From Hemiscyllium ocellatum (taxonomy: Eukaryota), in the NCBI RefSeq assembly GCF_020745735.1, contig NC_083438.1, positions 38,359,949 through 38,423,948 of the forward strand: DNA of 64,000 nucleotides, in the 5' to 3' direction. This document shows positions 6,250 to 62,656 of the stretch, piece by piece. Each line of letters starts with the position of its first letter. Position 1 is the first letter of the stretch. The translations under genes were made by a program, and so were the position numbers. The notes below the pieces were generated by a model. It searched no databases and was not told the origin of the DNA. It saw only the letters and a program-made list of their open reading frames with translations.

Positions 6250-6594
6250 ATGGTGCTGTTGTGACTGTGTACACCTTGGAGTCTGTGTACGGGAATCGGG
6301 ACCAGACGGTGATCCTCCCATGTCGCCTCATCGTTTCCGGTCCTGAGGTGAACGTGGTCTCTGTAACCTGGAAGGGTCCAAACGGGACCAACATTGCTGT
6401 GTACAGCCCTCAGCACGGGGTCAATTACCCAGGAGAGGGTAACTCCAGTCTCATTTCATTCCAAAACCCTTCGAAGGAAGATGCCACACTGGTGATCAGA
6501 AACTTGAGCAGAAGAGACGCCGGACTCTATGCCTGTTCCTGGACAACGTATCCGGACGGAATCTTTTCGAGTGAAACGGTGTTGACTATTTCAG
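6250..6594 (+). CDS. Gene A IgV exon (nectin/PVR-family receptor, CD226/CD96/TIGIT-like V domain)
   Basis: Acceptor ttttattag| and donor tcag|gtgagg; 345 nt, phase 1-1. Encodes DGAVVTVY...TVILPCRL...VSVTWK...IAVYSPQHG...DATLVIRNLSRRDAGLYACSWTTYPDG...VLTIS, with V-set Cys/Trp/DxGxYxC, the AX6G motif and the TYP motif of the PVR family. Confidence 0.93.
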
Positions 6595-6959
6595 GTGAGG
6601 GAAGCAACACTGGACAGCACTTTGTGCAGAGGTAACAATACGATGGCAGCATTTGAGGAATCCCTGGGTTGCTACACCAGGAACCCGTCTCTTTGGCAGA
6701 GAGCTGCAATTGCAGAGGAATTGACGGATATGTCTGGAATGTGACTGTATCAGTGTTAGTGACCATAAAATGATTATTGATCACAAGGAAAAAAAACCCT
6801 AAAGTTGGTGGTTATCAGCAGTGTTCTGTCCGATATGTAACTCCAGACCCACAGCGATGTCACTGACTCCGAGAGTCCCTCCAGTGCAGAAAGAGGCCAT
6901 TCGGCCAATCACGTCTACACCGGGACTGCAAAGAGCATCCACCTCCCTCCAACCTTGTG

Positions 6960-7515
6960 TTTCCCATGGCCAATCCACCCTAAGCTGCACATCCCTGGGC
7001 ACTATGGGACAATTTCCCATGGTCAATCCACCCTAGCCTACACATCCCTGGGCACTATGGGACAATTTCCCATGGCCAATCCACCCTAACCTGCACATCC
7101 CTGGACACTATGTGACAATTTAGCATGGCCAATCCACCCTAACCTGCACATCCCTGGGCACTATGGGACAATTTCCCATGGCCAATCCACCCTAACCTGC
7201 ATATCCCTGGGCACTATGGGACAATTTCCCATGGCCAATCCACCCTAACCTGCACATCCCTGGGCACTATGGGACAATTTAGCATGGCCAATCCACCCTA
7301 ACCTACACAACCCTGGGCACTATGGGACAATTTAGCATGGACAATCCACCCTAGCGTGCAAATCTTTGGACTGTGGGAGGAAACCAGAGCACCTGAAGTA
7401 AACCCCCACAGACACGGGGAGGATGTACAAGCTCCACACAGACAGGTGCCCGAGGCTGGAATCGAATTCGGGTCCCTGGCGCTGTGAGGCAGCAGTGCTA
7501 ACCACCGTGCCACCC
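6960..7515 (-). repeat. V-SINE with expanded 53-bp internal tandem repeat (about 7 units)
   Basis: Unit ccctaacctgcacatccctgggcactatgggacaatttcccatggccaatcca, followed by the SINE head at 7345-7515. Confidence 0.9.
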
Positions 7516-7534
7516 TGAGAGCGAGCCTGGCCCT

Positions 7535-7800
7535 CCAACAACCATGATCATCTCCCTGCGTATCAGCTATGACTCCAACCGTTCGAGACTTTGCCCCCCG
7601 ATACCCATTGAATCCAGCTTTACCAGCGCTCCGTGATACCGCACTCGGTCGAATGTGGCCTTGATGTCAAGAACTGTCACTCTCCCCTCCCCTCGCTCAA
7701 TTTAGCCTGTGGTGAGCCAAGGCTAGACTGAGGTCAGGAGCTGAGTGGTCCAGGTGGAACCCAAGCTGGGCAGGTCATTGCTGAGCAGGTGCTGGTAGCA
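7535..7800 (-). mobile_element. Degenerate LINE RT fragment
   Basis: Minus-strand translation VLDIKATFDRV..GALVKLDSMGIGG resembles the CR1/L2 RT motif LDI.KAFD.V. Confidence 0.6.
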
Positions 7801-8609
7801 GCACTGTTTTGTAATATGGCGTGCGTCAGTGTGTGCTGAATTGCCTCAAATAGAAGCAATTAAATCAGGCAATATTCAAATGCGGTTGAAGTGCATCACT
7901 TTTTCTTCCTCTATCTTAGAGTCACTTCCTTTTTTAGCTGCCAGTTCTCCCCAATATTTGTAAACACTGCAAACGCTCAATCACACTTCCTGAGTCAAAA
8001 AACCCTGATGTTACTGGAACTTCAACAGAAAGGGTATTTTCTTTTCTTTTTTTGTCACTGGCTATGCCACCATCTCTCGCCCACATTTTACCCAATTTAT
8101 AAAATGTCTGAACAAGGTAGTAGGTTAGGGGATAATAGTGGGCTACTGAATGGCCGATGCAGTGCATTGACATGGACAGCATGGAAACAGGCCCTTCGGC
8201 CCATCTCATCTGTGCTGACAAGATATCTAAATTAATCACAGAAGCCCTACAGTGTGGAAACAGGCCCTTCGGCCCAACAAGCCCATACTGGCCCTCTGAA
8301 GAGTAACACAACCAAACTCATTCCCTGATACTCTACCTTTACACCTGACTAATGCACCTAAACTAATTAAAAATCACACAACAGCTCAAACCTGTTGGAC
8401 TATAACCTGTTAGGAGAAAGTGAGGTCTGCAGATGCTGGAGATCAGAGCTGAAAATGTGTTGCTGGAAAAGCGCAGCAGGTCAGGCAGCATCCAAGGAGC
8501 AGGAGATTTGACGTTTCGGGCATGAGCCTTTCTTCAGGACTATAACCTGGTGTTGTGTGATTTTCTTAATTTTGTACACCCCAGCTCAACACTGGTACCT
8601 CCAAATTGC

Positions 8610-9200
8610 ACCAACCTGCACATCCCTGGACACTATGGGTAATTTCCCATGGTCAATCCACTCTAACCTACACATCCCTGGGCACTATGGGACAATTTCC
8701 CATGGCCAATCCACCCTAACCTGCACATCCCTGGGGACTATGGGACAATTTCCCATGGCCAATCCACCCTAACCTGCACATCCCTGGGCATTACAGGACA
8801 ATTTCCCATGGCCAATCCACCCTAACCTGCACATTCCTGGGCACTATGGGACAATTACCCATGGCCAATCCAGTGTAACCTGCACATCCCTGGGCACTAT
8901 GGGACAATTTCCCATGGCCAATCCACCCTAACCTGCACATCCCTGGACACTATGGGACAATTTCCCATGGCCAATCCACCCTAACCTGCACATCCCTGGA
9001 CACTATAGGACAATTTCCCATGGCCAATCCACCCTAACCTGCACATCTTTGGATTGTGGGAGGAAACCGGAGCCCCTGAAGGAAACCCACGCAGACACGG
9101 GGAGAATGTGCAAACCCCACACAGACAGTCACCTGAGGGTGAGATCAAACCCGGGTCCCTGGTACCCTGAGGCATCAGTGCTAACCACTGAGCCACCTAA
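8610..9200 (-). repeat. V-SINE with 53-bp internal array (about 8 units)
   Basis: Same 53-bp unit, with the SINE head at 9050-9200. Confidence 0.9.
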
Positions 9201-9204
9201 CCCA

Positions 9205-10260: not shown

Positions 10261-10274
10261 GGAGAGACAATGAT

Positions 10275-10741: not shown

Positions 10742-10861
10742 AGGATACCCCGGTAAGATTCCGAGTGTACGTTATCCTTGCGGTCATCTGCCTGGTGCTG
10801 CTGCTTGGTCTGCTGTTATTGGCGTACGCGTTGGTGAGCTGGGTGAGCCAACACCTTCAGG
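10742..10861 (+). CDS. Gene A transmembrane exon
   Basis: Acceptor tgctcttccag| and donor g|gtaagt; 120 nt, phase 1-1. Encodes EDTPVRFRVYVILAVICLVLLLGLLLLAYALVSWVSQHLQ, a long uncharged hydrophobic stretch in frame with the V exon. Confidence 0.88.
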
Positions 10862-10992: not shown

Positions 10993-11188
10993 NNNNNNNN
11001 NNNNNNNNNNNNNNNNNNNNNNNNNNNNNNNNNNNNNNNNNNNNNNNNNNNNNNNNNNNNNNNNNNNNNNNNNNNNNNNNNNNNNNNNNNNNNNNNNNNN
11101 NNNNNNNNNNNNNNNNNNNNNNNNNNNNNNNNNNNNNNNNNNNNNNNNNNNNNNNNNNNNNNNNNNNNNNNNNNNNNNNNNNNNNNNN
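10993..11188. other. Assembly gap
   Basis: Run of N flanked by GATA-type microsatellite; a second gap lies at 11297-11444. Both are in gene A's post-TM intron. Confidence 0.99.
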
Positions 11189-11950
11189 AGATTTTTAGAT
11201 AGATAAACAGATAGAAAGATTTTCACAGTTTTTTTTAGATAGTTAGATTTCAAGGATTGTTCAAATACATAGATAAATAGATACATATTGACCAATNNNN
11301 NNNNNNNNNNNNNNNNNNNNNNNNNNNNNNNNNNNNNNNNNNNNNNNNNNNNNNNNNNNNNNNNNNNNNNNNNNNNNNNNNNNNNNNNNNNNNNNNNNNN
11401 NNNNNNNNNNNNNNNNNNNNNNNNNNNNNNNNNNNNNNNNNNNNTGGATAGATGGATAGGCAGTGAATAGATAGTTAGATAAATAGATAGATAGATAGAT
11501 AGATAGTGGGCGGCACGGTGGCACAGTGGTTAGCACTGCTGCCTCACAGCACCTGAGACCCGGGTTCAATTCCCGACTCAGGTGACTGTGTGGAGTTTGC
11601 ACGTTCTCCCTGTGTCTGCGTGGGTTTCCTCCGGGTGATCCGGTTTCCTCCCACAGTCCAAAGATGTGCGGGTCAGGTGAATTGGCCATGCTAAATTGCC
11701 CGTAGTGTTAGGTAAGGGGTAAATGTAGGGGTATGGGTGGGTTTCGCTTCGGCGGGTCGGTGTGGACTTGTTGGGCCGAAGGGCCTGTTTCCACACTGTA
11801 AGTCTAAGTCTAATAGATAGATATTCAAAGAATATTTTGGGTAGCTAAATATTCACAGACTTTTAGATAGGTAGATAGAAAAATAGATAGAAAGATAGAT
11901 ATTCACAGATTTCTCAGCAGATAGGTAAATAGATAGGTAGATAAATAATG
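11189..11950. repeat. (GATA)n-like microsatellite tract with a full V-SINE inserted at about 11508-11810
   Basis: atagatagat arrays on both sides; SINE with A/B boxes and a taagtc tail. Confidence 0.88.
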
Positions 11951-12224: not shown

Positions 12225-12262
12225 TTGCTGGGAGGAACTCAAAGGAGACGGACCTGGATGAG
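12225..12262 (+). CDS. Gene A first cytoplasmic exon
   Basis: Acceptor ttcttttccttgcggtttag| and donor gag|gtatga; 38 nt, phase 1 to 0. Encodes VAGRNSKETDLDE and supplies exactly the phase change needed between the TM exon and the ITIM exon. Confidence 0.72.
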
Positions 12263-15445: not shown

Positions 15446-15574
15446 TGCCCCAGTGAGATTGTGTACACATCCGTGAATATACAGCAGCAGAATGTCGGAA
15501 CACCGAAGGGTTGGCACCATGAAGATAATGTCGATTCAGAGGAGATTGTCTATAGTGTTCTCAAACACAAGTAG
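15446..15574 (+). CDS. Gene A terminal exon with two ITIMs
   Basis: Acceptor gttatttttcaatag|, phase 0. Encodes CPSEIVYTSVNIQQQNVGTPKGWHHEDNVDSEEIVYSVLKHK* (TAG at 15572-15574). IVYTSV and IVYSVL both fit (I/V/L/S)xYxx(L/V/I); the tyrosines are 29 aa apart. Confidence 0.85.
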   Translation, partial: CPSEIVYTSVNIQQQNVGTPKGWHHEDNVDSEEIVYSVLKHK

Positions 15575-16789: not shown

Positions 16790-18700
16790 ATCTGCACATC
16801 CCTGGACACTATGGGTAATTTAACATGGCCAATCCACTCTGACCTGCACATCCCTGGACACTATGGGACAATTTCCCATGGCCAATCCACCCTGACCTGC
16901 ACATCCCTGGACACTATGGGACAATTTCCCATGGCCAGTCCACCATGCGACAATTTAGCATGGCTAATCCACCCTAACCTACACATCCCACGACACGATG
17001 GGACAACTTACCTGGTCAATCCACTCTAACCTGCACATCCCTGGGCACTATGGGACAATTTCCCATGGCCAATCCACCCTAACCTGCGCATCCCTGGGCA
17101 CTATGGGACAATTTCCCAAGGCCAATCCACCCTAACCTGCACATCCCTAGGACACTATGGGTAACTTAGCATGGCTAATCCACCCTAACCTGCACATCCC
17201 TGGACACTATGGGTAACTTAGCATGGCTAATCCACCATAACTTGCATATCCCAGAACACTGTGGGACAATTTCCCATGGCCAATCCACCCTAACCTGCAC
17301 ATCCCTGGGCACTATGGGACAATTTCCTATGGCCAATCCACCCTAACCTGCACATCCATGAACACTATGGGACAATTTCCCATGGCCAATCCACCCTAGC
17401 CTGCACATCCCTGGACACGATGTGACAATTTCCCATGGCCAATCCACCCTAACCTGCACATCTCTGAACACTATGGGACAATTTCCCATGGCCAATCCAC
17501 CCTAGCCTGCACATCCCTGGACACGATGTGACAATTTCCCATGGCCAATCCACCCTGACCTGCACATCTCTGGGCACTATGGGACAATTTCCCATGGCCA
17601 ATCCACCTTAACCTGCACATCCCTGGGCACGATGGGACAATTTAGAATGGCCAATCCACCCTAACCTGCACATCCCTGGACACTATGGGACAGTTTCCCA
17701 TGGCCAATCCACCTTAATCTGCACATCCCTGGACACTATGGGACAATTTAGCATGGCTAATCCACCCTAATCTGCACATCCCTGGACACTATGGGACAAT
17801 TTAGCATGGCTAATCCACCCTAACCTGAACATCCCTGGGCACTATGGGACAATTTCCCATGGCCAATCCACCCTAACCTGCACATCCCTGGGCACTATGG
17901 GACAATTTCCCATGGCCAATCCACCCTAACCTGCACATCCCTGGGCACTATGGGACAATTTAGCATGGCCAATCCACCCTAACCTGCACATCCCTGGGCA
18001 CTATGGGACAATTTCCCATGGCCAGTCCACCCTAACCAACACATCCCTGGACACTATGGGACAATTTCCCATGGCCACTCCACCCTAACCTGCACATCCC
18101 TGGACACTATGGGTAACTTAGCATGGCTAATCCATTCTAACTTGCATATCCCTGAGCACTATGGGACAATTTCCCATGGCCACTCCACCCTAACCTGCAC
18201 ATACCTGGGCACTATGGGACAATTTCCCATGGCCAATCCACCCTAACCTGCAGATCCCTGAACACTATGGGACAATTTCCCATGGCCAATCCACCCTAAC
18301 CTGCACATCCCTGAACACTATGGGACAATTTCCCATGGCCAATCCACCCTAACCTGCACATCCCTGGACACTATGGGACAATTTCCCATGGCCAATCCAC
18401 CCTAACCTGGACATCCCTGGACACTATGGGACAATTTCCCATGGCCAATCCACCCTAACCTGCACATCCCTGGGCACTATGGGACAATTTCCCATGGCCA
18501 ATCCACCCTAACCTGCACATCCCTGGGCGCTATGGGACAATATCCCATGGCCAATCCACCCTAATCTGCACATCTTTGGACTGCGGGAGGGAACTAGAGC
18601 ACCCGGAGGACTTCCACACAGACAGTCTCCCGAGGGTGGGATCGAACCTGGGTCCCTGGTGCTGGGAGGCAGCAGTACTAACCACTGAGCCACCGTGACG
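16790..18700 (-). repeat. V-SINE with a very large 53-bp internal array (about 33 units)
   Basis: Continuous units at 16790-18570, SINE head at 18570-18700, SINE tail remnants at about 16670-16790. Confidence 0.95.
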
Positions 18701-20429: not shown

Positions 20430-20820
20430 AGCAGGAGGATGGAAGAACACAGCAAGGCAGGCAGCATCAGGAGGGACAGGCAGGAGGCTGGGAGAACACA
20501 GCAAGGCAGGCAGCATCAGGAGGGACAGGCAGGAGGCTGGGGGAACACAGCAAGGCAGGCAGCATCAGGAGGGACAGGCAGGAGGCTGGGGGAACACAGC
20601 AAGGCAGGCAGCATCAGGAGGGACAGGCAGGAGGCTGGGAGAACACAGCAAGGCAGGCAGCATCAGGAGGGACAGGCAGGAGGCTGGGGAAACACAGCAA
20701 GGCAGGCAGCATCAGGGGGACAGGCAGGAGGCTGGGGGAACACAGCAAGGCAGGCAGCACCACGAGGGACAGGCAGGACGCTGGGAGAACACAGCAAGGC
20801 AGGCAGCACCAGGAGGTGGA
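20430..20820. repeat. Same 49-bp minisatellite in reverse orientation (about 8 copies), adjoining a Penelope-like fragment
   Basis: Unit aggagggacaggcaggaggctgggggaacacagcaaggcaggcagcatc. It runs into a Penelope-like terminal region at about 20820-21170. Confidence 0.93.
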
Positions 20821-23315: not shown

Positions 23316-23559
23316 TAACACTAATTGCTCATCCAATTAAAACACAATTTACAAACAACGAGTCATTGCTGATGCTCTGGGAAGAGACCGTACAGCTCAG
23401 GACTCCACCTGGTGCTCAAAGTAACATGCTGCAGTCTTTGTATTCAGGGGAAAATGATACTCACCAAGATATAAAAGTAAAGTCACCCACCTTCACATAA
23501 ACCAAGGGTCCTTCGGTAGTGCCAGAGCTATAAGCTCGCAAATAGAATCATTCAGAAAA

Positions 23560-37030: not shown

Positions 37031-37193
37031 TGTAGGGAATGATTCAACACAGCTGATTATTTGGACAGGAACATTCTGAGTGGGCAGTAATCAATCCAAA
37101 TTGAAATGATGCACTATTGAATACCTGTAATGAGTTGAAGTAGCAGTCGATATATAAGAAAATGCTTCCATGTTTCAGTGTGAAAGTATTTAC

Positions 37194-37304
37194 CTGCTGA
37201 CTTGTGTCGTTTCTGGATGAGTAGAGCAATTGTCAATGCAACCACAGCGATCACCAGCACTCCCACTATCACCCATGGAATGATGAGCTTGCTATCGGTA
37301 TGAC
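37194..37304 (-). CDS. Gene B transmembrane exon
   Basis: Acceptor ctttgtgttttcacag| and donor gcag|gtaaat; 111 nt, phase 1-1. Encodes GHTDSKLIIPWVIVGVLVIAVVALTIALLIQKRHKSA: an uncharged TM helix followed by a basic stop-transfer stretch. Confidence 0.9.
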
Positions 37305-38619
37305 CTGTGAAAACACAAAGAGAAGGGAATGGGGAGTGAACAAGGCAATTGGACACCGACTGGCAAGAATCTCCTTTATAAGGTTCCTCCACATAAGCGT
37401 GTTTCGGTTCTCAATGTTCCTGTTTCCTCTGATGGCCCATTGCAGTGGACAGCTGTCATTTCCCTTAATATGAAGACCCTCATGGCACTCAGTGATTGAG
37501 CGAGACACACAACACGTGTTGGAAGCAGTGATTGCAATGTGCAGACACAGATGTAGAGGGGGGAGCAGCAGTGACTGTGGACAGGCAATGCTCGTGGATA
37601 AAGGTGTTCAACTCGGGTGACGAATACTGGGAGATTACCATCATCTTGACATCAGTGATGTGACGGATGTTGCACTTCGGAAAGTCAAAACAACATTGGA
37701 CTTATACAGGAAAGACTGAGGAGTGTTGTAGAACAGAGGGACGGGGGACTTCAAGTTTATAGTCAGTTGAAAGTGGTGTCACAGGTAGACAGGGCAGTGC
37801 AGAAGGCAGTTGGCATGCTGGCTTTCATTGGTCAAGGCATTGAATATCGGAGTTGGGATGTGATGTTACAGTTGTATCAGTCAGCGGTTTTTGAGATGAT
37901 TTGTGTCTCAGGTTGATGATATGGATGTAGGTTAGCTCGTTGAGCCGGAAGGTTTGTTTTCAGACGCTTCGTCACCGTGACCTCATCAGTGAGATCCTTC
38001 GGTGAAGTTGTGTAAGCTGTTGGTGAGGCCACACATGGATTATTGTGCATCGTTTTGGTCACCCTGTTACAGGAACGGTATAGTTAAACAGAAAAGAATG
38101 TAAAGAAGATTGATGGGGCTATTGCCTGAGTTACAGGCAGAGGTTGGCCAGTATCGGATTTTATCCTTCGACCGTCGGAGAATGAAAGGCGATCTTATTG
38201 AGGTGTATAAAACATGAGGGGCACTGATAGGATGTATGCAGATAGTTTTTTTTTCCCAGGAATGGGGATTTGGAAACTTAAGGGCACTGGGTAAAGGTGA
38301 GAAGGGAAGCATTTAAGAAGGACATCAGGGGCAAATTCTTTATGTAGAGCGGTGCGTGTATGGAATGGGCTGCCAGAGAAAGTGGGTGAGGCAGGTACAA
38401 CAGCAACATTTCAAAACCATTTGGACAGACACCTGGATGGGAAGGGATTAGAGGGATATGGAGCAAATGCGGGCAATTGGAACTAGCCGATTGGGCCAGC
38501 ATGGACCAGTTTGGGCTGAACGGCCTGTTTCCATGCTGTATTACTCTAAGACTCTAAACAGTAAGGCAATAAGCAAGATTGCTTTCCATACATATCCCAA
38601 GAATGTGTTTTTCCATGTA

Positions 38620-39204: not shown

Positions 39205-39742
39205 GGGCACGGACAATCCACCCTAACCTGCACATCCCTGGACGCTATGGGATAATTTCCCATGACCAATTCACCCTAACCTGCACATCCCTGGGCATTG
39301 TGGGACAATTTCCCATGGCCAATCCACCCTAACCTGCACATCCCTGGACACCATGGGAAATTTAGCATGGCCAATTCATCCTAACCTACACATCCCTGAG
39401 CACTATGGGACAATTTCCTATAGCCAATCCACCTTAACTTGCACATCCCTGGACACTATGGCACAATTTCCCATAGCCAATCCACCCTAATCTGCACATT
39501 CCTGGACACTATGGGACAATTTCCCATGGCCAATCCACCCTAACCTACACATCCCTGGACGCTATGGGATAATTTCCCATGGCCAATCCACCCTAGCCTG
39601 CACATCCCTGGACACTATGGGACAATTTCCCATGGCCAATCCACCCTTACCTGCACATCCTTGGGATCTGTGGGACAATTTCCCATGGCCAATCCACCCT
39701 AACCTGCACATCCCTGGGCACTAAGGGACAATTTCCCATGGA
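39205..39742 (-). repeat. 53-bp SINE-derived array (about 10 units)
   Basis: Same unit; truncated by the Penelope-like insertion at 39745. Confidence 0.9.
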
Positions 39743-40575: not shown

Positions 40576-41460
40576 AGAAACTCAACTGGACCAACCACAT
40601 AAACACAGCGGCTCCAAGAGCAGGTCAGAGGCTGAGAATTCTGCAGCGAGTAACTCCCCTCCTGACTCTCCCCAAAGCCTGTCCCACCATTGACAAGGCC
40701 CAAGGCAGGAGGGGGAGGGAATACTCCCCACTTGCCCCTGGATGGGGGCAGCTCCAACAACACTCGAGAAGCTCGACACCATCCAGGGACAAAGCAGCCC
40801 CCACTGGATTGGCCCCACACCCACAAACATCCCCTCCCTCCCCCCACCGACGCTCAGTAACAGCAGTATGTACCATCCCCTCCCTCCCCCCACCGACGCT
40901 CAGTAACAGCAGTGGGTACCATCCCCTCCCTCCCCCCACCGACCCTCAGTAACAGCAGTTTGTACCATCCCCTCCCTCTCCCACCCCCCCCCAGTAACAG
41001 CAGTGTGTACCATCCCCTCCCTCCCCCCACCGACACTCAGTAACAGCAGTGTGTACCATCCCCTCCCTCTCCCACCCCCCCTCAGTAACAGCAGTGTGTA
41101 CCATCCCCTCCCTCCCCCACCACCCCTCAGTAACAGCAGTGTGTACCATCCCCCCCCCAGTAACAGCAGTGTGTACCAGCTACAAGATGCTCTGCAGAAA
41201 CTCACCAAAGACCCTCAGGCAGCACCTTCCAAACCCGTGACCTCTCCCAGTCAGACAGGGGCAGGAGGTAGCTGGGAACAGCTCTCCCTCCAGGTTCCAA
41301 CAGCCAATGTATCGCTGTTCCATCGTTCCCGCTGCTCCAACAGCCTGGATGTGAGCATGCCCACACGGCTTGTACAGCAGTATTACAGACAGCCAACCGA
41401 CCCTCACCTTCTCCAGGAATACATAGGGAAGGGGAATAAATGCTGGGTCATAGAGAGGCA
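40575..41460 (+). mobile_element. Second copy of the CR1/L2-clade element with C-rich minisatellite
   Basis: Colinear with 5230-6200 and 61070-62400. Confidence 0.85.
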
Positions 41461-41519: not shown

Positions 41520-44005
41520 CATAGAGTCATAGAGATGTACAGCACGGAAACAGATCCTTCGGTCCAACCCGTCCATGCCATCCAGATATCCCAACCCAAT
41601 CTAGTCCCACCTGCCAGTACCAGGCCATATCCCTCCAAACCCTTCCTATTCATATACCCATCCAAATGCCTCTTAAATAATGCAATTGTACCAGCCTCCA
41701 CCACTTCCTCTGGCAGCTCATTCCATACACGTACCACCCTCTGCGTGAAACGTTGCCCCTGAGGTCTTTTTTATATCTTTCCCCTCTCACCCTAAACCTA
41801 TGGCCTCTAGTTCTGGACTCCCCGACCCCAGGGAAAAGACTTTGTCTATTTACCCTATCCATGCCCCTCATAATTTTGTAAACCTCTATAAGGTCACCCC
41901 TCAGCCTCCGACACTCCAGGGAAAACAGCCCCAGCCTGTTCAGCCTCTCCCTATAGCTCAGATCCTCCAACCCTGGCAACATCCTTGTAAATCTTTTCTG
42001 AACCCTTTCAAGTTTCACAACATCTTTCCAATAGGAAGGATACCAGAATTGCACACAATATTCCTACAGTGGCCTAACCAATGTCCTATAAAGCCGCAAA
42101 TTACCTCCCAACTCCTGTACTCAATACTCTGACCAATAAAGGAAAGCATACCAAACACCTTCCTCACTATCCTATCTACCTGCGACTCCACTTTCAAGGA
42201 GCTATGAACCTACACTCCAAGGTCTTTTTGTTCAGCAACATTCCCCAGGACCTTACCATTAAGTGGATAAGTCCTGCTAAGATTTGCTTTCCCAAAATGC
42301 AGCACCTCCCATTCATCTGAATTAAACTCCATCTATCACTTCTCAACCCATTGGCCCATATATAAGTGACAAAAAGTAGAGGACCCAGCACCGATCCTTG
42401 TGGCACTCCACTGGTCACAGGCCTCCAGTCTGAAAAACAACCCTCTACCACCACCCTCTGTCTTCTACCTTTGAGCCAGTTCTGCATCCAAATGGCTAGT
42501 TCTCCCTGTATTCCATGCGATCTAACCTTGCTAATCAGTCTCCCATGGGGAACCTTGTCAAACGCCTTACTGAAGTCCATATAGATCACATCTACTGCTC
42601 TGCCCTCATCAATCATCTTTGTTACTTCTTCAAAAAACTCAATCAAGTTTGTGAGACATGATTTCCCAAGCACAAAGCCATGTTGACTATCCCTAATCGA
42701 TCCTTGCCTTTCCAAATACATGGACATCCTGTCCCTCAGGATTCCCTCCAACAACTTGCCCACCACCGAGGTCTGGCTCACTGGTCTATAGTTCCCTGGC
42801 TTGTCTTTACCGCCATTCTTAAACAGTGGCACCACGTTTGCCAACCTCCAGTCTTCCGGCTTCTCACCTGTGACTATCGATGATACAAATATCTCAGCAA
42901 GAGGCCCAGCAATCACTTCTCTAGCTTCCCACAGAGATCTCGGGTACGCCTGATCAGGTCCTAGGGATTTATCCACCTTTAACCGTTTCAAGACATCCAG
43001 CACTTCCTCCTCTGTAATCTGGACATTTTGCAAGATGTCACCATCCATTTCCCTACAGTCTATATCTTCCATATCCTTTTCCACAGTAAATACTGATGCA
43101 AAATATTTATTTAGTATCTCCCCCATTTTCTGTGGCTCAACACAAAGGCCGCCTTGCTGATCTTTGAGGGGCCCTATTCTCACCCTAGTTACCCTTTTGT
43201 CCTTAATATATTTGTAAAACCCTTTGGATTTGCCTTAATTCTATTTGCCAAAGCTATCTCATGTCCCCTTTTTGCCCTCCTGATTTCCCTCTTAAGTATA
43301 CTCCTACTTTCTTTATACTCTTTTAAGGATTCACTCGATCTATTCTGCCTGTACCTGACATTTGCTTCCTTCTTTTTCTTAACCTAACCCTCAATTTCAT
43401 TCGTCATCCAGCATTCCCTATACCTACCAGCCTTCCCTTTCATCCTGACAGGAATATACTATCTCTGGATTCTTGTTATCTCATTTCTGAAGGCTTCCCA
43501 TTTTCCAGCCGTCCCTTTACCTGCGAACATCTGCCTCCAATCAGCTTTCGAAAGTTCTTGCCTAATACCGTCAAAATTGGCCTTTCTCCAATTTAGAACT
43601 TCAACTTTTAGATCTGGTCTATCCTTTTCCATCACTATTTTAAAACAAATAGAATTATGGTCGCTGGCCCCAAAGTGCTCCCCCACTGACACCTCAGTCA
43701 CCTGCCCTGCCTTATTTCCCAAGGTCAAGTTTTGCACCTTCTCTAGTAGGTACATCCACATACTGAATCAGAAAATTGTCTTGTACACACTTAAGAAATT
43801 CCTCTCCACCTAAACCCTTAACACTATGGCAGTCCCAGTTGATGTTTGGAAAGTTAAAATCCCCTACCATAACCACCCTATTATTCTTACAGATAACTGA
43901 GATGTCCTTACAAGTTTGTTTCTCAATTTCCCTCTGACTATTGAGGGGTCTATAATACAATCCCAATAAGGTGATCATCCCTTTCTTATTTCTCAGTTCC
44001 ACCCA
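41520..44005 (-). mobile_element. Large CR1/HER1 LINE (endonuclease end plus RT, disrupted)
   Basis: ORF 42194-43183 has NYRPVS, QHGFV.GKSCLTNL, DFSKAFDKVPH and GVPQGSVLGPLLF; the FADD region is deleted near 42360; endonuclease remnants at 43459-44020; frameshifted. Confidence 0.95.
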
Positions 44006-44139: not shown

Positions 44140-45195
44140 AAGGATAAGAGAGGGTGATGGTAGAGGGTTGTTTTTCAGACTGGAGGCCTGTGACCATGGA
44201 GTGCCACAAGGATCGGTGCTGGGCCCTCTACTTTCCATCATTTGTACAAAGGATTTGGATGTGAACATGGGAGGAATGGTTCGTAGGTTTGCAGATGACA
44301 CCAAAATTGGAGGTGTAGTGGACAGCGAAGAAGGTTACCTCAGAATACAACGGGATCTTGATCAGATGGGCCAATGGGTTGAGGAGCAGCAGATGGAGTT
44401 TAATTTAGATAAATGCGAGGTGCTGCATTTTGAAAAGGCAAATCAGGGCAGGACTTATACACTTAATGGTAAGGTCCTGGGGAGTGTTGCTGAACAAAGA
44501 GACCTTGGAGTGCAGGTTCATAGCTCCTTGAAAGTGGAGTCTCAGGTAGACAGGATAGTCAACAATGCGTTTGGTATGCTTTCCTTTATTGGTCAGAGTA
44601 TTGAGTACAGGAGTTGGGAGGTCATGTTGTGGCTGTACAGGACATTGGTGAGGCCACTTTTGGAATACTGTGTTCAACTCTGGTCTCCCTGCTACAGGAA
44701 AGATGTTGTGAAATCTGAAAGGGTTCAGAAAAGATTTACAAGAGTGTTTGTGGGTCTGAGCTACAGGAAGAGGCTGAACAGGCTGGGGCTGTTTTCCCTG
44801 GAGCGTCAGAGGCTGAGGGGTGACCTTATAGAGGTTTATAAAATCATGAGGGGGCAAGGATAGGATAAATAGACAAAGTCTTTTCCCCAGGGTGGGGGAG
44901 TCCAGAATAAGAGGGCATAGGTTTAGGGTGAGAGGGGAAAGATATAAAAGAGACCTAAGGGGCAACTTTTTCACCCAGAGGGTGGTACGTGTATGGAATG
45001 AGCTGCCAGAGGAAGTTGTGGAGGCTGGTACAATTACAACATTTAAGAGGAATTTGGATGGGTATATGAATAGGAAGGGTTTGGAGGGATATGGGCCGGC
45101 TGCTGGCAGGTGGGACTAGATTGGGGTGGGATATCTGGTTGGCATGGATGGGTTGGACCGAAGGGTCTGTTTCCGTGCTGTCCATCTCTATGACT
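44140..45195 (+). mobile_element. CR1/HER1 LINE RT C-terminus and 3' UTR
   Basis: ORF 44168-44863 has GVPQGSVLGPLL and RRFADDTKIGG; the tail ends in ctctatgactc. Confidence 0.95.
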
Positions 45196-46091: not shown

Positions 46092-46240
46092 CTGTATCGC
46101 TCGGTCTCAGCAAAACTTCCAACCGGCCCACTCCTGTCCCAATTGTGTTGGTAGCTTCACATGTCCAGTTGCCGTTTGCCTGAGCGCTCATTTCCCCAAT
46201 GATGGCCACTTCATCTCTGATCACCGCTCCTTCTGGTAAC
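46092..46240 (-). CDS. Gene B D3 second half exon
   Basis: Acceptor cctttgtaattcacaag| and donor acag|gtacac; 149 nt, phase 2 to 1. Encodes LPEGAVIRDEVAIIGEMSAQANGNWTCEATNTIGTGVGRLEVLLRPSDT, with the CEATN.IG motif; the split D3 is typical of nectin genes. Confidence 0.88.
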
Positions 46241-50099: not shown

Positions 50100-52590
50100 A
50101 CACGGAGGCTCAGTGGTTAACACTGCTGCGTCCCAGCACAAAGGACGCGGGGTCGATTCCACACTCAGTCTTTGTGAAGTTTCTATGTTCTCCCTGTATC
50201 TGCACGGGTTTCCTCCCACAGTTCAAAGATGTGCAGGTTAGGGTGGATTCGCCATGGGAAATTGTCCCATAGTGTCCAGGGATGTGTAGGTTAGGGTGGA
50301 TTGGCCATGGGAAATTGTCTCATAGTGCCCAGGGATGTGTAGGTTAGGGTGGATTGGCCAAGAGAAAGTGTCCCATAGTGCTCAGGGATGTGTAGGTTAG
50401 GGTGGATTGTACGTGGGAAATTGTCTCATAGTGCCCAGGAATGTGAAGGTTAGGGTGGATTGGACATGGGAAATAGTCCCATAGTGCCCAGGGATGTGCA
50501 GGTTAGGCTGGATTGGCCATGGGAAATTGTCCTATGGTGCCCAGATATGTGCAGGTTGGGGTGGATTGGCCATGGGAAATTGTCCCATAGTGATCAGTGA
50601 TGTGCAGGTTAGGGTGGATTCGCCATGGAAATTGTCCCATAGTGCCCAGGGATGTGCAGGTTAGGGTGGATTCGCCATGGGAAATTGTCTCATAGTGTCC
50701 AGGGATGTGTAGGTTAGGGTGGATTGGCCAAGAGAAATTGTCCCATAGTGCTAAGGGATGTGTAGGTTAGGGTGGATTGTCCATGGGAAATTGTCTCATA
50801 GTGCCCAGGAATGTGCAAGTTAGGGTGGATGGGCCATGGGAAATTGTCCCATAGTGCCCAGGGTTGTGCAGGTTAGGGTGGATTGGACATGGGAAATTGT
50901 CCCATAGTGCCCAGGGATGTGCAGGTTAGGCTGGATTGGCCATGGGAAATTGTCTCATAGTGCCCAGAGATGTGCAGGTTGGGGTGGATTGGCCATGGGA
51001 AATTGTCCCATAGTGTCCAGGGATGTGCAGGCTAGGGTGGATTGGCCTTGGGAAATTGTCCCATAGTGCCCAGTGATGTGCAGGTTAGGGTGGATTGGCC
51101 ATGGGAAATTGCCATAGAGTGCCCAGGGATGTGCAGGTTAGGTTGGATTGGCCATGGGAAATTGTCCCATAGTGCCCAGAGATGTATAGGTTGGGGTGGA
51201 TTGGCCATGGGAAATTGTCCCATAGTGCCCAGTGTTGTCCAGGTTAGGGTGGATTGGACATGGGAAATTGTCCCATAGTGCCCAGGGATGTGCAGGTTAG
51301 GGTGGATTGGCCATGGGAAATTGTCCCACAGTGCCGAGGGATGTGCAGATTAGGGTGGATTGCCAATGGGAAATTGTCCCATAGTTCCCAGAGATGTGTA
51401 GGTTGGGGTGGATTGGCCATGGGAAATTGTCATAGAGTGCCCAGGGATGTGCAGGTTAGGTTGGATTGGCCATGGGAAATTGTCCCATAGTGCCCAGTGA
51501 TGTGCAGGTTAGGGTGCTTTGGCCATGGGAAATTGTCCCATAGTGCCCAGGGATGTGCAGGTTAGGGTGGATTCGCCATGGGAAATTGTCCCATAGTGCC
51601 CAGGGATGTGCAGGTTCGGGTGGATTCGCCATGGGAAATTGTCTCATAGTGCCCAGGGATGTGTAGGTTAGGGTGGATTGGCCAAGAGAAATTGTCCCAT
51701 AGTGCTCAGGGATATGTAGGTTAGGGTGGATTATCCATGGGAAATTGTCTCATAGTGCCCAGGAATGTGCAGATTAGGGTGGATGGGCCATGGGAAATTG
51801 TCCCATAGTGCCCAGGGATGTGCAGGTTAGGGTGGATTCGCCATGGGAAATTGTCCCATAGTGCCCAGGGATGTGCAGGTTCGGGTGGATTCGCCATGGG
51901 AAATTGTCTCATAGTGCCCAGGGATGTGTAGGTTAGGGTGGATTGGCCAAGAGAAATTGTCCCATAGTGCTCAGGGATGTGTAGGTTAGGGTGGATTATC
52001 CGTGGGAAATTGTCCCATAGTGCCCAGGGTTGTGCAGGTTAGGGTGGATTGGCCATGGGAAATTGTCCCATACTGCCCAGGGATGTGCAGGTTGGCGTGG
52101 ATTGGCCATGGGAAATTGTCATAGTGTGCCCAGGGATGTGCAGGTTAGGGTGGATTGGCCATGGGAAATTGTCCCATAGTGCCTAGTGATGTGCAGGTTA
52201 GGGTGGATTGGCCATGGGAAATTGTCATATAGTGCCCAGGGATGTGCAGGTTAGGGTGGATTGGCCATGGGAAATTGTCCCATAGTGCCCAGGGATGTGC
52301 AGATTTGGGTGGATTGCAAATGGGAAATTGTCCCATAGTGCCCAGGGATGTGCAGATTAGGGTGGATTGGTCATGGGAAATTGTCCCATAGTGCCCAGGG
52401 ATGTGCAGGTTAGGGTGGATTGGCCATGGGAAATTGTCCCATAGTGTCCAGGGATGTGCAGGTTAGGGTGGATTGGCCGTGGGAAGTGTGGGGTTAAAGG
52501 GGCATAGATAGGACTTGGGGTGGGATGGCCTTCAGAGAGTTAGTGCAGGCTTGATGGGCCAAATGGCCTGTTTCTTCTCTTTAGAGATTC
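50100..52590 (+). repeat. V-SINE with the largest 53-bp internal array (about 42 units)
   Basis: Head at 50100-50230, array at 50230-52490, tail at 52490-52590. Confidence 0.95.
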
Positions 52591-53313: not shown

Positions 53314-53431
53314 CCTCGCCACGTGTACGTTGTCGCTGGAGGATTGGCATCTGCGTGACATGTCACAGCAACATTGCGGCTGTTTACACTACAGCTCTGA
53401 TCATATCCCGTTATAGTCACCTCTGGGGGGT
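53314..53431 (-). CDS. Gene B D3 first half exon
   Basis: Acceptor cctttctctttgtag| and donor gagg|gtaagt; 118 nt, phase 1 to 2. Encodes YPPEVTITGYDQSCSVNSRNVAVTCHADANPPATTYTWRG, matching the nectin D3 pattern Y.PEV.I.G(Y/F)D...C.ADANPP. Missed by the ORF track. Confidence 0.9.
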
Positions 53432-55199: not shown

Positions 55200-56150
55200 G
55201 TGGCACAGCGGCTCAGTGGTTAGCACTGCAGCCTCGCAGCGTCAGAGAACCAAGTTCGATTCCAGCCTCCGTTTATGTCTGTGTGGAGTTTGCACATTCT
55301 CCCCGTGTCTGCGTGGGTTACCTCCCACAGCCCAAAGATATGCAGGTTAGAGTCGTTTGACCAAGCTAAACTGTCCCATAGTATCCAGGGATGTGCAGGT
55401 TGGGGTGGATTGGCCATGGGAAATTGTCCCACAGAATTCAAGGATATCTTAGCCTGCCTGGCACACTCTCCTCATTCCTGATGAAGGGCTCTGGCCCGAA
55501 ATGTCGAATTTCCTGTTCCTTGGATGCTGCCTGACCTGCTGTGCTTTAACCAGCAACACATTTTCAGCTCTGATATCCAGCATCTGCAGACCTCACTTTT
55601 TACATGGGAAATTGTCCCATAGTGCCCAGGGATGTGCAGGTTAGGGTGGATTGGCTATGGGAAATTGTCCCATAGTGCCCAGGGATGTGCAGGTTAGGGT
55701 GGATTGGACATGGGAAATTGTCCCATAGTGTCCAGCGATGTGCGGGTTAGAGTGGATTGGCCATGGGAAATTGTCCCATAGTGTCCAGGGATGTGCGGGT
55801 TAGGATAGATTGGCCATGGGAAATTGTTCCATAGTGTCCAGGGATGTACAGGTTAGAGTGGATTGGCCATGGGAAATTGTCCCATAGTGCCCAGGGATGT
55901 GCAGGTTAGGCTGGATTGGCCATGGGAAATTGTCCTATAGTGCCCAGAGATGTGCAGGTTGGGGTGGATTGGCCATGGGAAATTGTCCCATAGTATCCGG
56001 GGATATCTCGGCAATGTGGGCTATCCATGGGGAATGCAGGGTTATCAGGATAAAGTAGGGGAATGACTCCAGGTGGGATGCTCTTCGGAGGGTTGCAGTA
56101 CAGTTGATGGGCCAAATGGACAGCTTTCATTCTGTAGGGATTTTATGATT
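55200..56150 (+). repeat. V-SINE with 53-bp array interrupted by a Penelope-type terminal repeat (about 55465-55600)
   Basis: catgggaaattgtccca occurs on both sides of the insert; units continue to about 56000. Confidence 0.85.
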
Positions 56151-56232
56151 GAATTGACTGGCTTATCAAGGAGCTGATGGTGCCCCCTACTCATCTTCTC
56201 AGCTACAGTCTGTCTTTCCATGTGGGACTTAC

Positions 56233-56526
56233 AGGAGATCTCCAGTTGTAAGCGGTATGTCTTGCTGCTGTCTGTTGCTGGGTGAGTGATAAAACACTCC
56301 ACAGTTTGACCATTGTCTGAACGACGTGGTCTCAGCTTGTACAGGCTGCTGACAGTCACTGTCCCGTTGCTGTTGGCCGTCTGGATGGTGGTGTGGTTCC
56401 CATGGAGACTGGATTTCCAGGTGATATCTGCTGCTGGTTTCCCAAAGGCCGCAATACACTGAGCCACAGGGACCTCGGAGAGTCCAGCCTTTACTGGGAC
56501 CGATGTCGCTATGTTGGTGGGAACCG
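56233..56526 (-). CDS. Gene B D2 Ig (C2-type) exon
   Basis: Acceptor tttatccctgacag| and donor cct|gtaagt; 294 nt, phase 1-1. Encodes AVPTN...VAQCIAAFGKPAADITW...NSNGTVTVSSLYKLRP...VECFITHP...LEIS, a typical nectin D2 (C.A..GKP....W, NGTVTV.S). Confidence 0.93.
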
Positions 56527-57763: not shown

Positions 57764-58102
57764 CTAGAATCGTTAAATGGACAGTTTTTCTCAGTTTTCC
57801 TTGAGGGAATATTGCAAGATCACATGTATAATTCCCCTCATCCTGCACTTCCAACGCTTTTATTCGGATTGATCCATCCTGGACAGATTGGTTTCTCAAC
57901 TCTATCCGTCCGGAATAGTTTTCATTTGGGACAGTAAGCCCAAGCCTCGGGCTATACACAGCGATGGGCTTCTCCTGATGGTCTTTTTCCCAGGAAAGTA
58001 GTGTAAACCTCCCCCTCTCTGGTGTCAGCTGGCACGGGATCAGTACCTCGGTCCCAACAAGAGCCGTGAGGAAGACCTTGTTTCCAACGACGCAAGTTGG
58101 AA
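57764..58102 (-). CDS. Gene B D1 IgV exon (nectin-like)
   Basis: Acceptor cctttcctag| and donor ctag|gtaagt; 339 nt, phase 1-1. Encodes VPTCVVGNK...EVLIPCQL...LLSWEK...IAVYSPRLG...DGSIRIKALEVQDEGNYTCDLAIFPQG...HLTIL, with AX6G and an FP.G motif. Confidence 0.93.
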
Positions 58103-59637: not shown

Positions 59638-59658
59638 AAAGTTCATCTCGCCTCTCCA
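59638..59658 (-). CDS. Candidate 21-nt cassette exon of gene B (VERRDEL)
   Basis: Strong acceptor ttagttcctctttcag| and donor ttt|gtaagt; 21 nt, phase 1-1, stop-free, located between the leader and V exons. No expression evidence. Confidence 0.4.
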
Positions 59659-59859
59659 CTGAAAGAGGAACTAATGTTGCATTTGAGAAGACTTGACACT
59701 TCAGTGCGGCAGTGGATTAATATTGTGAAGACAGAAAGATAAGACTGCTTATGGAGAGAAGCTGATGTTTTAACCCAATGTGAGATACTCACAAAATAAC
59801 TGCCCCTTCGTAACCCCCAGAGGTCCCAGAGACATTCACACTCAATGGCAAATATTTGC

Positions 59860-60560
59860 TACAGGAAGGATGTTATTAAACTGGAAGGAATGCGGAATAA
59901 GTTGTTGTCAGGACTCAACGGTCTGAGTTATAGGGAGAGATTGGACAAGCTAGGAGTGTTTTCCTTAGAGCGTAGGAGACTGAGGGGGGACCTTATAGAG
60001 GTGTAGAAGATCATGAGAGGCGTGGATAGGGTGAACACACTCAGTCTTTTCCCCAGGGTTGGGGAATCGTGGATTAGAGGGCATCAGTTTAAGGTCAGAG
60101 GGGGGAAAGAATAAAAGGGAGCCTGAGGGACAACGTTTTTACCCAGAGGATGGTACGCATATGGAATGAGCTGCCAGCAGAAAGGGTTGAGGCGGGTACA
60201 TCAACAACGTTTTACAGGCACTTGGACAGATACCTGGATAGAGAAGGATTAGGAGGATATGGGAGGAGAAAGTGAGGTCTGCAGATGCTGGAGATCAGAG
60301 CTGAAAATGTGTTGCTGGAAAAGCGCAGCAGGTCAGGCAGCATCCAAGGAGCAGGAGATTTGACGTTTCGGGCAGGGCTTCGAATCTGCTGCTCCTTGGA
60401 TGCTGCCTGACTTGCTGCGCTTTTCCAGCAGCACATTTTCAGCTCTGAAGGATGTGGGCCAAGTGCAGGGGAAATGGAGATTAGCAAAGGCTAATTTTGG
60501 ATAGCATGGACCAGTTCGGGCCGAAGGAGCTGTGTTTGCGCAATAGGATGCTATGACTCG
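59860..60560 (+). mobile_element. CR1 3' fragment containing a palindromic Penelope-type insertion (about 60265-60450)
   Basis: gagcgtaggagactgagggggga...; inverted arms ctgaaaatgtgttgctggaaaagcgcagc and gctgcgcttttccagcagcacattttcag. Confidence 0.8.
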
Positions 60561-61069
60561 AAGGTTTGTGAGTGAGGGGACTTTTCACCAAGCAGGGAAT
60601 CCATCACTCAATATCCCCCTCCCCTTCGTCCCCGCACCCCCAGACTGTTTCCATCGAAGGCTCCCCTCTTCTACACACTAGCTGTGAAACGATCTCCCAG
60701 AAACCTTTCAGGCAGCACCCCCGCCCAGATCATCACATCTCGCTGTCTCTCAGAACATCCCCCTTCCACCCCCACATCTTGGTGCCTCTTCCTCATTCTA
60801 TCTCATCTGCGTTCCTCTGGTTACTGACCATCCCGCCACTGGGATGAATTCCGAGAATGATCCTAGGAATGACGGATTTTAGATAGAAGGAAATATGACA
60901 GGGCCGTGTAAATCGTAAGGCTCCCACCACAGAGAGATTTCCAGCACTCACTCACGTTTGTATGTCAGTTTTAATATCTCAATAGGACCATAGGATTAAA
61001 CACTCACAGCTCGTAAATGAAAGAGCAGCCCATCGAATCTCGAGGACTGCGGTGATGTTACTTGTTATA

Positions 61070-62400
61070 AGAGCAGGTCAGAGGCTGGGAATCCTGCAGC
61101 GAGTAACTCCCCTCCTGACCCGCACCCCCAAAGCCTGTCCCACCATCGACAAGGTCCAAGGCAGGAGGGGGAGGGAATACTCCCCACTTGCCCCTGGGTG
61201 GGGGCAGCTCCAACAACACTCAAGAAGATCGACACCATCCAGGGACAAAGCAGCCCCCGGCTGGATTGGCCCCACAGCCACAAACATCCCCTCCCTCCCC
61301 CCACTGACGTTCAGTAACAGCAGTGTGTACCATCCCCTCCCTCCCTCCACTGACGCACAGTAACAGCAGTGTGTACCATCCCCTCCCTCCCCCACCCCCC
61401 CTCAGTAACAGCAGTGTGTACCATCCCCTCCCTCCCTCCACTGACGCACAGTAACAGCAGTATGTACCATCCCCTCCCTCCCCCACCCCCCCTCAGTAAC
61501 AGCAGTGTGTACTATCCCCTCCCTCCCCCACCGACGCTCAGTAACAGCAGTGTGTACAATCTGCTCCCTCCCCCCACCGACGCTCAGTAACAGCAGTGTG
61601 TACCATCCCCTCCCTCCCCCCACACCCCTCAGTAACAGCAGTGTGTACCATCCCCTCCCTCCCCCCACCCCCCTCAGTAACAGCAGTGTGTACCATCCCC
61701 TCCCTCCCCCACTTCCCCTCAGTAACAGCAGTGTGTACCATCCCCTCCCTCCCCCCATCTCCCCTCAGTAACAGCAGTGTGTACCATCCCCTCCCTCCAC
61801 TGACGCTCAGATACAGCAGTGTGTACCATCCCTCCCTCCCCCCACCCCCCCTCAGTAACAGCTGTGTGTACCAACTCCTCCCTCCCCCCACCGACGCTCA
61901 GTAACTGCATTGTGTACCAACCCCTCCCTCCCCCCACCGACGCTCAGTAACAGCAGTGTGTACCATCCCCTCCCTCCCCTCCCCCCACTCAGTAACAGCA
62001 GTGTGTACCATCCCCTACCCCCCCACCCCCCTCAGTAACAGCAGTGTGTACCATCCCCTCCCTCCCCCCACCCCCCTCAGTAACAGCAGTGTGTACCATC
62101 CCCTCCCTCCCCCCACCCCCCCTCATTAACAGCAGTGTGTACCATCCCCTCCCTCCCCCACCCCCCTCAGTAACAGCAGTGTGTACCAGCTACAAGACCC
62201 ACTGCAGAAACTCACCAAAGACCCTCAGGCAGCACCTTCCAAACCCACGGCCCCTTCCATCTGGAAGGACAAGGGGCAGCAGGTACATGGGAACCCCACC
62301 CCCCTGCAAGTTCCCCTCCCCTCACAATCCTGATTTAGGAATATATCAGCCTTCAGTGTCGCTCGGTCAGAATCCTGCAACTCCTACCCTCGCAGCACTG
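61070..62400 (+). mobile_element. Third copy of the CR1/L2-clade element with a C-rich minisatellite (about 61310-62190)
   Basis: Colinear with the copies at 5230 and 40575; about 19 units. Confidence 0.85.
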
Positions 62401-62607
62401 TGGGTGTCACCCCACCACATGGATGGCAGCAGTTCTCGATCACTCGGGGTGTGGAATAAACGGGAATATTGCCAGCCCAGTCTCTGGTCAATGTCAAAAA
62501 TTATCCAATATTCTGCATCAGGATATAGGAAGCGTGGGCTTGGTTTGAAAGCAGAAGGCTGGCAGAAAACATCTCTCAAAGTCGAGTGCTAAAGCTTGCA
62601 AACATAC

Positions 62608-62656
62608 CAGAGATTAGCGTGATGTACGCAGTTATCATCCAAATCATTAATGGCAT
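62608..62656 (-). CDS. Gene B leader (signal peptide) exon
   Basis: gcgggATG start with an in-frame TGA 36 nt upstream. Encodes hydrophobic MPLMIWMITAYITLIS, then G|gtatgt phase-1 donor, compatible with the V exon. Confidence 0.68.

Follow-up and report, generated by a model that had tools for sequence, protein, structure and literature searches.

Candidate paired activating and inhibitory receptors on a nectin/PVR scaffold in a gene cluster kept across sharks

The window analysed here, a 64-kb stretch of the genome of the shark Hemiscyllium ocellatum (CM036696.1, approximately 38,359,949-38,423,948; assembly GCA_020745735.1; 46.8% GC, four N gaps), holds, as judged from its sequence, two members of a three-gene cluster of nectin/PVR-type receptors that is kept across sharks and has previously gone undescribed. 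Genes A and B face each other tail to tail, on the plus and minus strands respectively, and gene C stands head to head with B beyond the edge of the window. B and C are putative paired activating and inhibitory receptors on a nectin/PVR scaffold, with near-identical ectodomains joined to opposite tails: that of B ends in a predicted tyrosine-based activation motif of immunoreceptors (ITAM) and that of C in a predicted inhibitory motif (ITIM) and switch motif (ITSM). We consider it probable that B and C address a single ligand through ectodomains homogenised by gene conversion while their tails are ancient and separate, and that A is a linked inhibitory receptor belonging to the same recognition network.

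Results

Twin ectodomains on opposite tails

Gene C, annotated in RefSeq as an H. ocellatum "nectin-1-like" protein of 418 amino acids (XP_060708648.1; P0176, isoform X1), starts 17.0 kb past the start of B on the opposite strand, and its cytoplasmic tail (...ETIVYASLDL...ESTVYADIKHHWRS) carries the ITIM and the ITSM. The two proteins are 87% identical in the variable-type (V) domain, 97% in the first C2 domain (C2a) and 93% in the second (C2b), compared with 47% in the stalk and transmembrane (TM) segment and 29% in the tail. In exon-by-exon blastn comparisons the ectodomain exons and the intron sequence beside them, over stretches of hundreds to thousands of bases, are approximately 94-96% identical, and the leader, the TM exon and all cytoplasmic exons show no detectable DNA similarity. 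Synonymous divergence (dS) between the twins is 0-0.065, against 0.5-1.3 between species over equivalent exons.

ITAM/ITIM twins are also found in Stegostoma tigrinum (P0154/P0152), Cetorhinus maximus (P0168/P0172) and Pristiophorus japonicus (P0169/P0173). Those of Stegostoma are 96, 99 and 98% identical in V, C2a and C2b, against 36% in the stalk and TM segment and 28% in the tail, and the pattern in Cetorhinus and Pristiophorus is alike. Between species the ectodomains are 41-65% identical, and the tails are recognisably orthologous at 51-64% for the ITAM type and 45-62% for the ITIM type. In a maximum-likelihood tree of the ectodomains the twins pair by species with 99-100% support, H. ocellatum B (Hoc_B) grouping with H. 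ocellatum C (Hoc_C) and leaving the Chiloscyllium ITAM gene outside; five changes in the type of tail, the maximal number, are needed on this tree. Old tails attached to young, species-specific ectodomains indicate concerted evolution of the B and C ectodomains by gene conversion. We rejected an assembly artefact as the source of this similarity, since the copies differ by approximately 5%, their introns are different and the pattern appears in four independent assemblies.

Paired receptors are recognised by linkage, near-identical ectodomains and opposite tails, a combination that B and C display in four species. A and B do not display it, as their V domains are only about 33% identical and the V-domain tree places A in one clade and B/C in another, each with 99/99 support; a preliminary description of this DNA had already judged A and B to be distant relatives rather than recent duplicates, and the tree agrees. 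Crude Nei-Gojobori estimates of the ratio of nonsynonymous to synonymous divergence (dN/dS) are approximately 0.9 between B and C and 0.3-0.7 between species, with codon maps that do not cover several V exons completely and cannot be relied on in the tails; these values indicate fast evolution and do not prove positive selection.

Gene order and distribution among sharks

The arrangement A>, <B, C> is kept in several sharks. In Stegostoma the genes run C(-), B(+), A(-), with the heads of C and B 5.9 kb apart and the tails of B and A 8.4 kb apart. In Cetorhinus C and B lie head to head at a distance of 5.2 kb, and an unannotated A-like exon with two ITIMs (EIVYSSLN...GIVYGILKQK; OZ077480.1, L007 31584-31697, minus strand) lies approximately 4 kb past the end of B on the opposite strand. 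In the whale shark, Rhincodon typus, a B-like remnant on the minus strand (NC_063378.1, L010 221-5289) lies between A(+) and C(+) and retains the ITAM micro-exons and the C2b exons, with an in-frame stop in C2b; V and C2a exons were not found there, and the remnant may represent loss of the activating partner. In Heptranchias perlo (L011) a 688-amino-acid RefSeq model named "nectin-2-like" (P0006) fuses two genes on one strand, an A-like half with a V domain, a TM segment and two ITIMs, and a C-like half with a V-C2-C2 ectodomain, a TM segment and an ITIM/ITSM tail. The fusion is probably an annotation artefact, and no B was detected between the two. The 10-kb flanks of the loci examined yielded no further members of the family and contain no neighbouring genes.

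In these searches, relatives with a V-domain identity of at least about 45% come from sharks only (Orectolobiformes, Lamniformes, Carcharhiniformes, Heterodontiformes, Hexanchiformes and Pristiophoriformes). Below them, at 39% or less, come "nectin-like" proteins of frogs and teleosts as well as a catfish CD226; rays and chimaeras are not among the matches, though the searches do not establish their absence.

Gene B: a nectin/PVR-type ectodomain with a split ITAM

Gene B comprises a leader, a V domain, a C2 domain, a second C2 domain spread over two exons, a TM segment, a YINV exon, two ITAM micro-exons and a terminal exon, all on the minus strand. The leader exon (62608-62656, ATG at 62656) has no DNA similarity to the C leader. 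The V exon (57764-58102; Pfam V-set E 1.8e-14; nectin-1 E 1.3e-15), 94% identical to the C exon in DNA, contains FTLLSW (57990-58007), AVYSPRLG (57939-57962), which is the AX6G submotif of the PVR family, and IFPQG (57798-57812). The first C2 exon, a CD80-like C2-set (56233-56526; Pfam C2-set_2 E 8e-16), is 99% identical to that of C, and the region around it, flanking intron included, is 94-95% identical over approximately 1.2 kb. The half-exons of the second C2 domain lie 7 kb apart; the first (53314-53431) belongs to a 1.3-kb stretch 96% identical to C, and the second (46092-46240) to a block of C homology (47280-44149) with 93% identity over 3.2 kb. Similarity to C is absent from the stalk/TM exon (37194-37304; 111 nt, frame-preserving), which encodes a TM helix without a charged residue (37216-37287).

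The tail begins with a 47-nt exon (34982-35028) encoding EEHYINV, a candidate pYxN site (35009-35023) of the Grb2-binding type that resembles the immunoglobulin tail tyrosine (ITT-like) motif. The ITAM is divided between a 30-nt micro-exon of phase 0-0 (32429-32458; DSPEINATYT) and a 44-nt micro-exon (32287-32330; SLKLGEQSVYNEIQ-), which completes YTSL-x7-YNEI; after splicing it reads YTSL-KLGEQSV-YNEI and fits the consensus Yxx(L/I)-x6-8-Yxx(L/I). Retention of the following intron would stop the frame at once (QR*), and the 28-nt terminal exon (31437-31464) encodes (R)CDAGKDTN and the stop, the same type of end as in Chiloscyllium P0165. The ITAM spacing is seven residues in every B orthologue, across shark orders; Y[IV]N[VI] is kept in Chiloscyllium, Stegostoma, Carcharodon, Cetorhinus and Pristiophorus; and both the boundary of the YxN exon and the division of the ITAM after "Y-x" are identical in Stegostoma (L005) and Cetorhinus (L007). 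Regular-expression matches are not evidence by themselves in this window, where a single-exon ITAM pattern misses the split motif and returns dozens of false matches in satellite and proline-rich repeats; splicing and cross-species conservation are what argue that the motifs of A and B are real.

Skipping of the phase 0-0 micro-exon (32429-32458) would leave a lone SVYNEI, which is ITIM-like; no annotated isoform in Hemiscyllium or Stegostoma skips it. RefSeq predicts isoforms that lack the TM segment in several relatives (P0155, P0007, P0171, P0178, P0017), and soluble forms of A and B are predicted to be possible, as the TM exons of both genes (111 nt in B, 120 nt in A) preserve the frame.

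In its ectodomain B is closest to the nectins: residues 27-311 match nectin-1 at E 4e-51 (177 bits), followed by nectin-3, PVR and nectin-2, and Pfam assigns V-set, C2-set_2 and Ig_3 domains. Against solved structures the B V domain matches nectin-1 best, nectin-2 and nectin-3 next, and PVR, CD226 and CD96 lower. Of the submotifs of the PVR family, all three genes carry AX6G, and T(F/Y)P occurs in A (TYP), with IFP in its place in B; the AX6G and (F/Y)P-x-G motifs of A and B align with those of nectin-1. The third, (V/I)(S/T)Q, is ITQ or LTQ in the Stegostoma, Chiloscyllium and Carcharodon relatives.

Gene A: a single V domain with two ITIMs

Gene A consists of a leader, encoded 5.27 kb upstream of the first position of the window, a single V domain, a TM segment, a small exon and a terminal exon with two ITIMs, and is encoded on the plus strand. 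Its V exon (6250-6594; phase 1-1; Pfam V-set E 8.5e-11; nectin-1 in the Protein Data Bank, E 2e-12) is 100% identical to the RefSeq model (P0001) and contains VVSVTW (6354-6371), AVYSPQHG (6396-6419), again the AX6G submotif, and TYPDG (6546-6560). The stalk/TM exon (10742-10861; 120 nt) is matched exactly by the model and encodes an uncharged TM helix (10765-10836). The small cytoplasmic exon (12225-12262; VAGRNSKETDLDE) was placed by tblastn, with 100% identity to residues 178-190 of P0001, and by the splice model. The terminal exon, stop included (15446-15574), carries the ITIMs IVYTSV (15458-15475) and IVYSVL (15545-15562), and this two-ITIM tail is kept in Rhincodon, Stegostoma, Heptranchias and Cetorhinus.

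When a profile is built from A-type V domains, its highest score is for nectin-1 (68 bits, E 6e-18), followed by nectin-2 (60 bits), nectin-3, CD226 (49 bits), PVR, and CD96 and TIGIT at about the same level (approximately 36 bits). Against solved structures the A V exon again matches nectin-1 best and nectin-2 and nectin-3 next, with PVR, CD226, CD96 and TIGIT lower, and TIGIT appears among the structure matches of A only, not of B. The A orthologues (Rhincodon "TIGIT-like" P0177, Stegostoma P0178 and the N-terminal half of P0006) form a clade of their own with 99/99 support. In the ESM Atlas A lies nearest to a "TIGIT-like" cluster by features and to nectin-2 by structure, which we take as a lead only.

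Gene models and assembly

GT-AG models built from the window reproduce all 402 amino acids of XP_060708596.1 (P0166) for B, in ten exons, and residues 24-232 of XP_060708626.1 (P0001), the last 209 of its 232 amino acids, for A, in four exons; all splice sites are canonical, and the facing stop codons are 15.9 kb apart. RefSeq labels A, found by a protein search with its V exon, an "uncharacterized protein LOC132833951" of 232 amino acids, and B, found by an exhaustive HMMER search with its V exon and then a word search, a "nectin-1-like" protein of 402 amino acids. The preliminary description had proposed two spliced, convergent genes of the nectin/PVR family, with AVYSPQHG, an (F/Y)P.G motif and two ITIMs in A, and AVYSPRLG, an (F/Y)P.G motif, a YxN site and an ITAM in B; the exact models recover these architectures and each of the motifs in its place, the ITAM extending over two micro-exons. 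The same description had named prior annotation of both genes with these tails as the point that would remove their novelty, and this is the case: the sequences of A and B, tails included, are not new, RefSeq models of them being in existence.

Of the four N gaps, two (10993-11188 and 11297-11444) fall within the A intron between exons 10742-10861 and 12225-12262, one (31595-31970) within the last intron of B, between 32287 and 31464, and one (28999-29735) between the genes or 3' of B. None of the gaps interrupts a reading frame, and we expect no hidden exon in them, because the Chiloscyllium (P0165) and Rhincodon (P0177) orthologues, from independent assemblies, join the identical exons with nothing extra. 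In a run of the same organism that is probably RNA (X1), all seven words sampled from 37192-37308, around the B TM exon, are present, as is 15% of the genomic stretch of B from V to C2; in the RNA runs of a second organism 43% of the B TM-exon words are present.

Discussion

The closest working analogue of B and C is the CEACAM1/CEACAM3 pair, in which a member with ITIM/ITSM motifs and a member with an ITAM of its own are linked, evolve rapidly and share near-identical ectodomains; pathogen pressure acts here, and gene conversion holds the binding domains of the inhibitory receptor and of its ITAM-bearing decoy alike. CEACAM paired receptors are described for Xenopus as well (PMC5112662, PMC2832619, PMC7042247). 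B and C resemble this pair in their opposite tails and shared, apparently gene-converted ectodomains, and they differ from it in an ectodomain of nectin/PVR type, with a V domain that has the canonical cysteine pair followed by C2-set_2. We considered and rejected the possibility that they are shark CEACAMs, as the CEA match reaches 50.8 bits and is confined to the C2 region, compared with 177 bits for nectin-1; no CEACAM is among the top matches of the B V domain, which keeps the canonical cysteines.

B resembles PVR (CD155), nectin-2 and the classical nectins in its V-C2-C2-TM order, its end-to-end similarity and its AX6G and (F/Y)P motifs, and, like PVR, it combines immune tyrosine motifs with the lack of a PDZ-binding end (PMC7286890). 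The afadin-binding, PDZ-type C-terminus E/A-x-Y-V belongs to the classical nectins and is absent from both shark proteins (B ends in ...CDAGKDTN, C in ...IKHHWRS), which argues that neither is a nectin proper. On these comparisons B and C are best described as nectin/PVR-family ectodomains on putative immunoreceptor tails, neither nectins proper nor CEACAMs, and the RefSeq name "nectin-1-like" reflects nothing beyond the similarity of their ectodomains. A survey of nectin evolution assigned only nectin-1, nectin-3, necl-1 and necl-2 to shark and confined PVR to placental mammals (PMC7286890). The conserved Y-I/V-N-V of B is a candidate pYxN site like the ITT-like motif of CD226 and TIGIT, which in TIGIT recruits Grb2 (PMC8981293); unlike in CD226 and TIGIT, it belongs to a ligand-type molecule with three domains, where a full ITAM follows it.

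Gene A shares its architecture with TIGIT and PVRIG, in that one V domain of the PVR family is followed by a TM segment and a short cytoplasmic tail with ITIMs, and NCBI names its whale-shark orthologue "TIGIT-like". It departs from them in having two ITIMs and no ITT-like YxN, and its V profile is closer to nectin-1, nectin-2 and CD226 than to TIGIT. We therefore describe A as TIGIT-shaped by architecture with a nectin-like V domain, a description drawn from motifs and profile scores that gives TIGIT orthology no support. The membership in the nectin/PVR family that the preliminary description proposed holds; within the family the A V domain is closest to nectin-1 and nectin-2, not to TIGIT, CD96 or CD226.

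Under the reading we favour, with B and C a pair directed at one ligand, recurrent conversion over the ectodomain exons would keep the ligand-binding parts of the two proteins alike. Once ligand is bound, Src-family kinases would phosphorylate both tails; B would then engage a Syk/ZAP-70-type kinase through its ITAM and Grb2 through pYxN, and C would engage SHP-type phosphatases through its ITIM and ITSM. A would most likely act in the recognition network of B and C, whether by binding them as a counter-receptor or by competing for their ligand.

In this model the phosphorylation of the tails, the recruitment of adaptors, the ligand and the cell types are predictions, and the support for the A and B junctions comes from RefSeq models, from canonical splice sites and from cross-species conservation. 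Several points weigh against the model. The short ITAM of the B tail gives no match to the Pfam ITAM model, and (V/I)(S/T)Q is degenerate in both Hemiscyllium proteins, which have lost the glutamine (VSV in A, FTL in B). The activating partner appears dispensable in some lineages, judging from the B copy of the whale shark, which looks decayed, and the undetected B of Heptranchias, and the positive selection on the V domain that a pathogen-driven model predicts is not clear from the dN/dS values.

The ectodomain motifs also admit other arrangements. A and B could be a cognate receptor-ligand pair, docking V to V through lock-and-key contacts of AX6G and (F/Y)P, with inhibition in the cell bearing A and ITAM activation in the cell bearing B. 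Both V domains do carry AX6G and (F/Y)P-x-G in alignment with nectin-1, submotifs by which the PVR/nectin docking family is defined (PMC8981293), the tail-to-tail linkage is kept in Stegostoma and Cetorhinus, and the ESM Atlas feature neighbour of A is the "TIGIT-like" cluster. We nonetheless regard this arrangement as rather unlikely, given that the linkage may reflect an unrearranged cluster, that the glutamine of the third submotif is gone from both Hemiscyllium proteins, and that A is still present in the whale shark and in Heptranchias, in which B is decayed or undetected, so that it does not depend on B specifically. It is compatible with the pairing of B and C, in which case A would also bind C. 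The inhibitory/activating A-B module of the preliminary description survives to the extent that Stegostoma and Cetorhinus keep the two genes linked; B has its inhibitory counterpart primarily in C rather than in A. A related and similarly tentative proposal is a shark checkpoint axis of PVR/TIGIT type with a wiring unlike the mammalian one, in which the ligand would be the gene-converted ITAM/ITIM pair B/C itself, A would bind it and both cells would signal at every contact, the three-gene cassette predating the split of galeomorphs and squalomorphs.

Nectins bind other nectins heterophilically, and TIGIT, CD96 and CD226 compete for PVR; in the same manner A, B and C might compete for a shared third ligand, such as a conventional nectin or necl on target cells. 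That all three V domains are nectin-like and that the identity of B and C implies a common ligand speak for such competition, yet the A V domain, about 33% identical to that of B and placed in a separate clade, carries no implication of the same specificity, and we hold this arrangement, too, to be doubtful. The most improbable of the alternatives makes B and C ordinary adhesion molecules whose tyrosine motifs are YxxPhi signals for endocytosis or sorting. YTSL and YNEI also fit YxxPhi, the ectodomain is nectin-like, and the ITAM model of Pfam finds no match; against this reading stand the lack of an afadin/PDZ-binding C-terminus and a twin with ITIM and ITSM whose ectodomain evolves in concert, which is a signature of immune paired receptors. 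The seven-residue spacing of the YxxL/I pair, invariant across shark orders, favours binding by tandem SH2 domains over simple sorting.

In full-text literature searches we found neither nectin-like ITAM/ITIM twins nor this cluster described for sharks. We know of no nectin or PVR with an ITAM or with an ITAM/ITIM twin, and of no paired receptors on a nectin/PVR scaffold. What would be new, the gene models themselves being already known, is accordingly the set of putative paired immune receptors on this scaffold together with a linked, TIGIT-shaped gene. Paired activating and inhibitory receptors are a recurring answer to pathogen pressure, and the mammalian nectin/PVR scaffold supplies the ligands of the TIGIT/CD226/CD96 checkpoint axis. 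The cluster would place nectin-family recognition in immune regulation, and ligand-type molecules with signalling motifs of their own, already in cartilaginous fish. With three genes, clear motifs and several genomes, it offers a testable system for the origin of checkpoint axes and decoy receptors, and it corrects the automatic names "nectin-1-like" and "uncharacterized".

Repeats and mobile elements

A 53-bp satellite forms arrays of up to 43 copies on both strands, in the introns of A and B and in intergenic sequence (6960-7364, 8613-9047, 16941-18581, 36647-36918, 39214-39741, 50228-52485 and 55603-55994), and also fills approximately 21 kb of a gene C intron (L002); its translation, 'YGTISHGQSTLTYTSL', mimics the ITAM pattern many times and pollutes motif scans. 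Arrays of a 49-bp repeat at 232-907 (97% matches) and 20431-20816 (95% matches) flank A in opposite orientation, 20 kb apart, and produce spurious long open reading frames. A C-rich tandem repeat of 45-46 bp (91-bp doublet), probably the internal repeat of a transposon, occurs just upstream of the A V exon (5481-5881), at 40828-41157 and in the first intron of B (61285-62188). The sequence between A and B holds an AT-rich 20-bp array of approximately 5 kb (23554-28755, about 165 copies, 66% matches) that reaches toward the N gap at 28999. A 33-bp array (62851-63397, 16.5 copies) lies approximately 200 bp upstream of the B ATG, in the divergent region between B and C, and could bear on shared regulation of the two genes. 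Open reading frames resembling the reverse transcriptase of long interspersed nuclear elements (LINEs), at 42194-43183 (minus strand, 329 amino acids) and 44168-44863 (plus strand, 231 amino acids), were reported inside the 7-kb intron that splits the second C2 domain of B, and related LINE 3' fragments ('RRRLRGDLIEVYKI...') occur at approximately 9717, 24570, 41650, 46352 and 63504.

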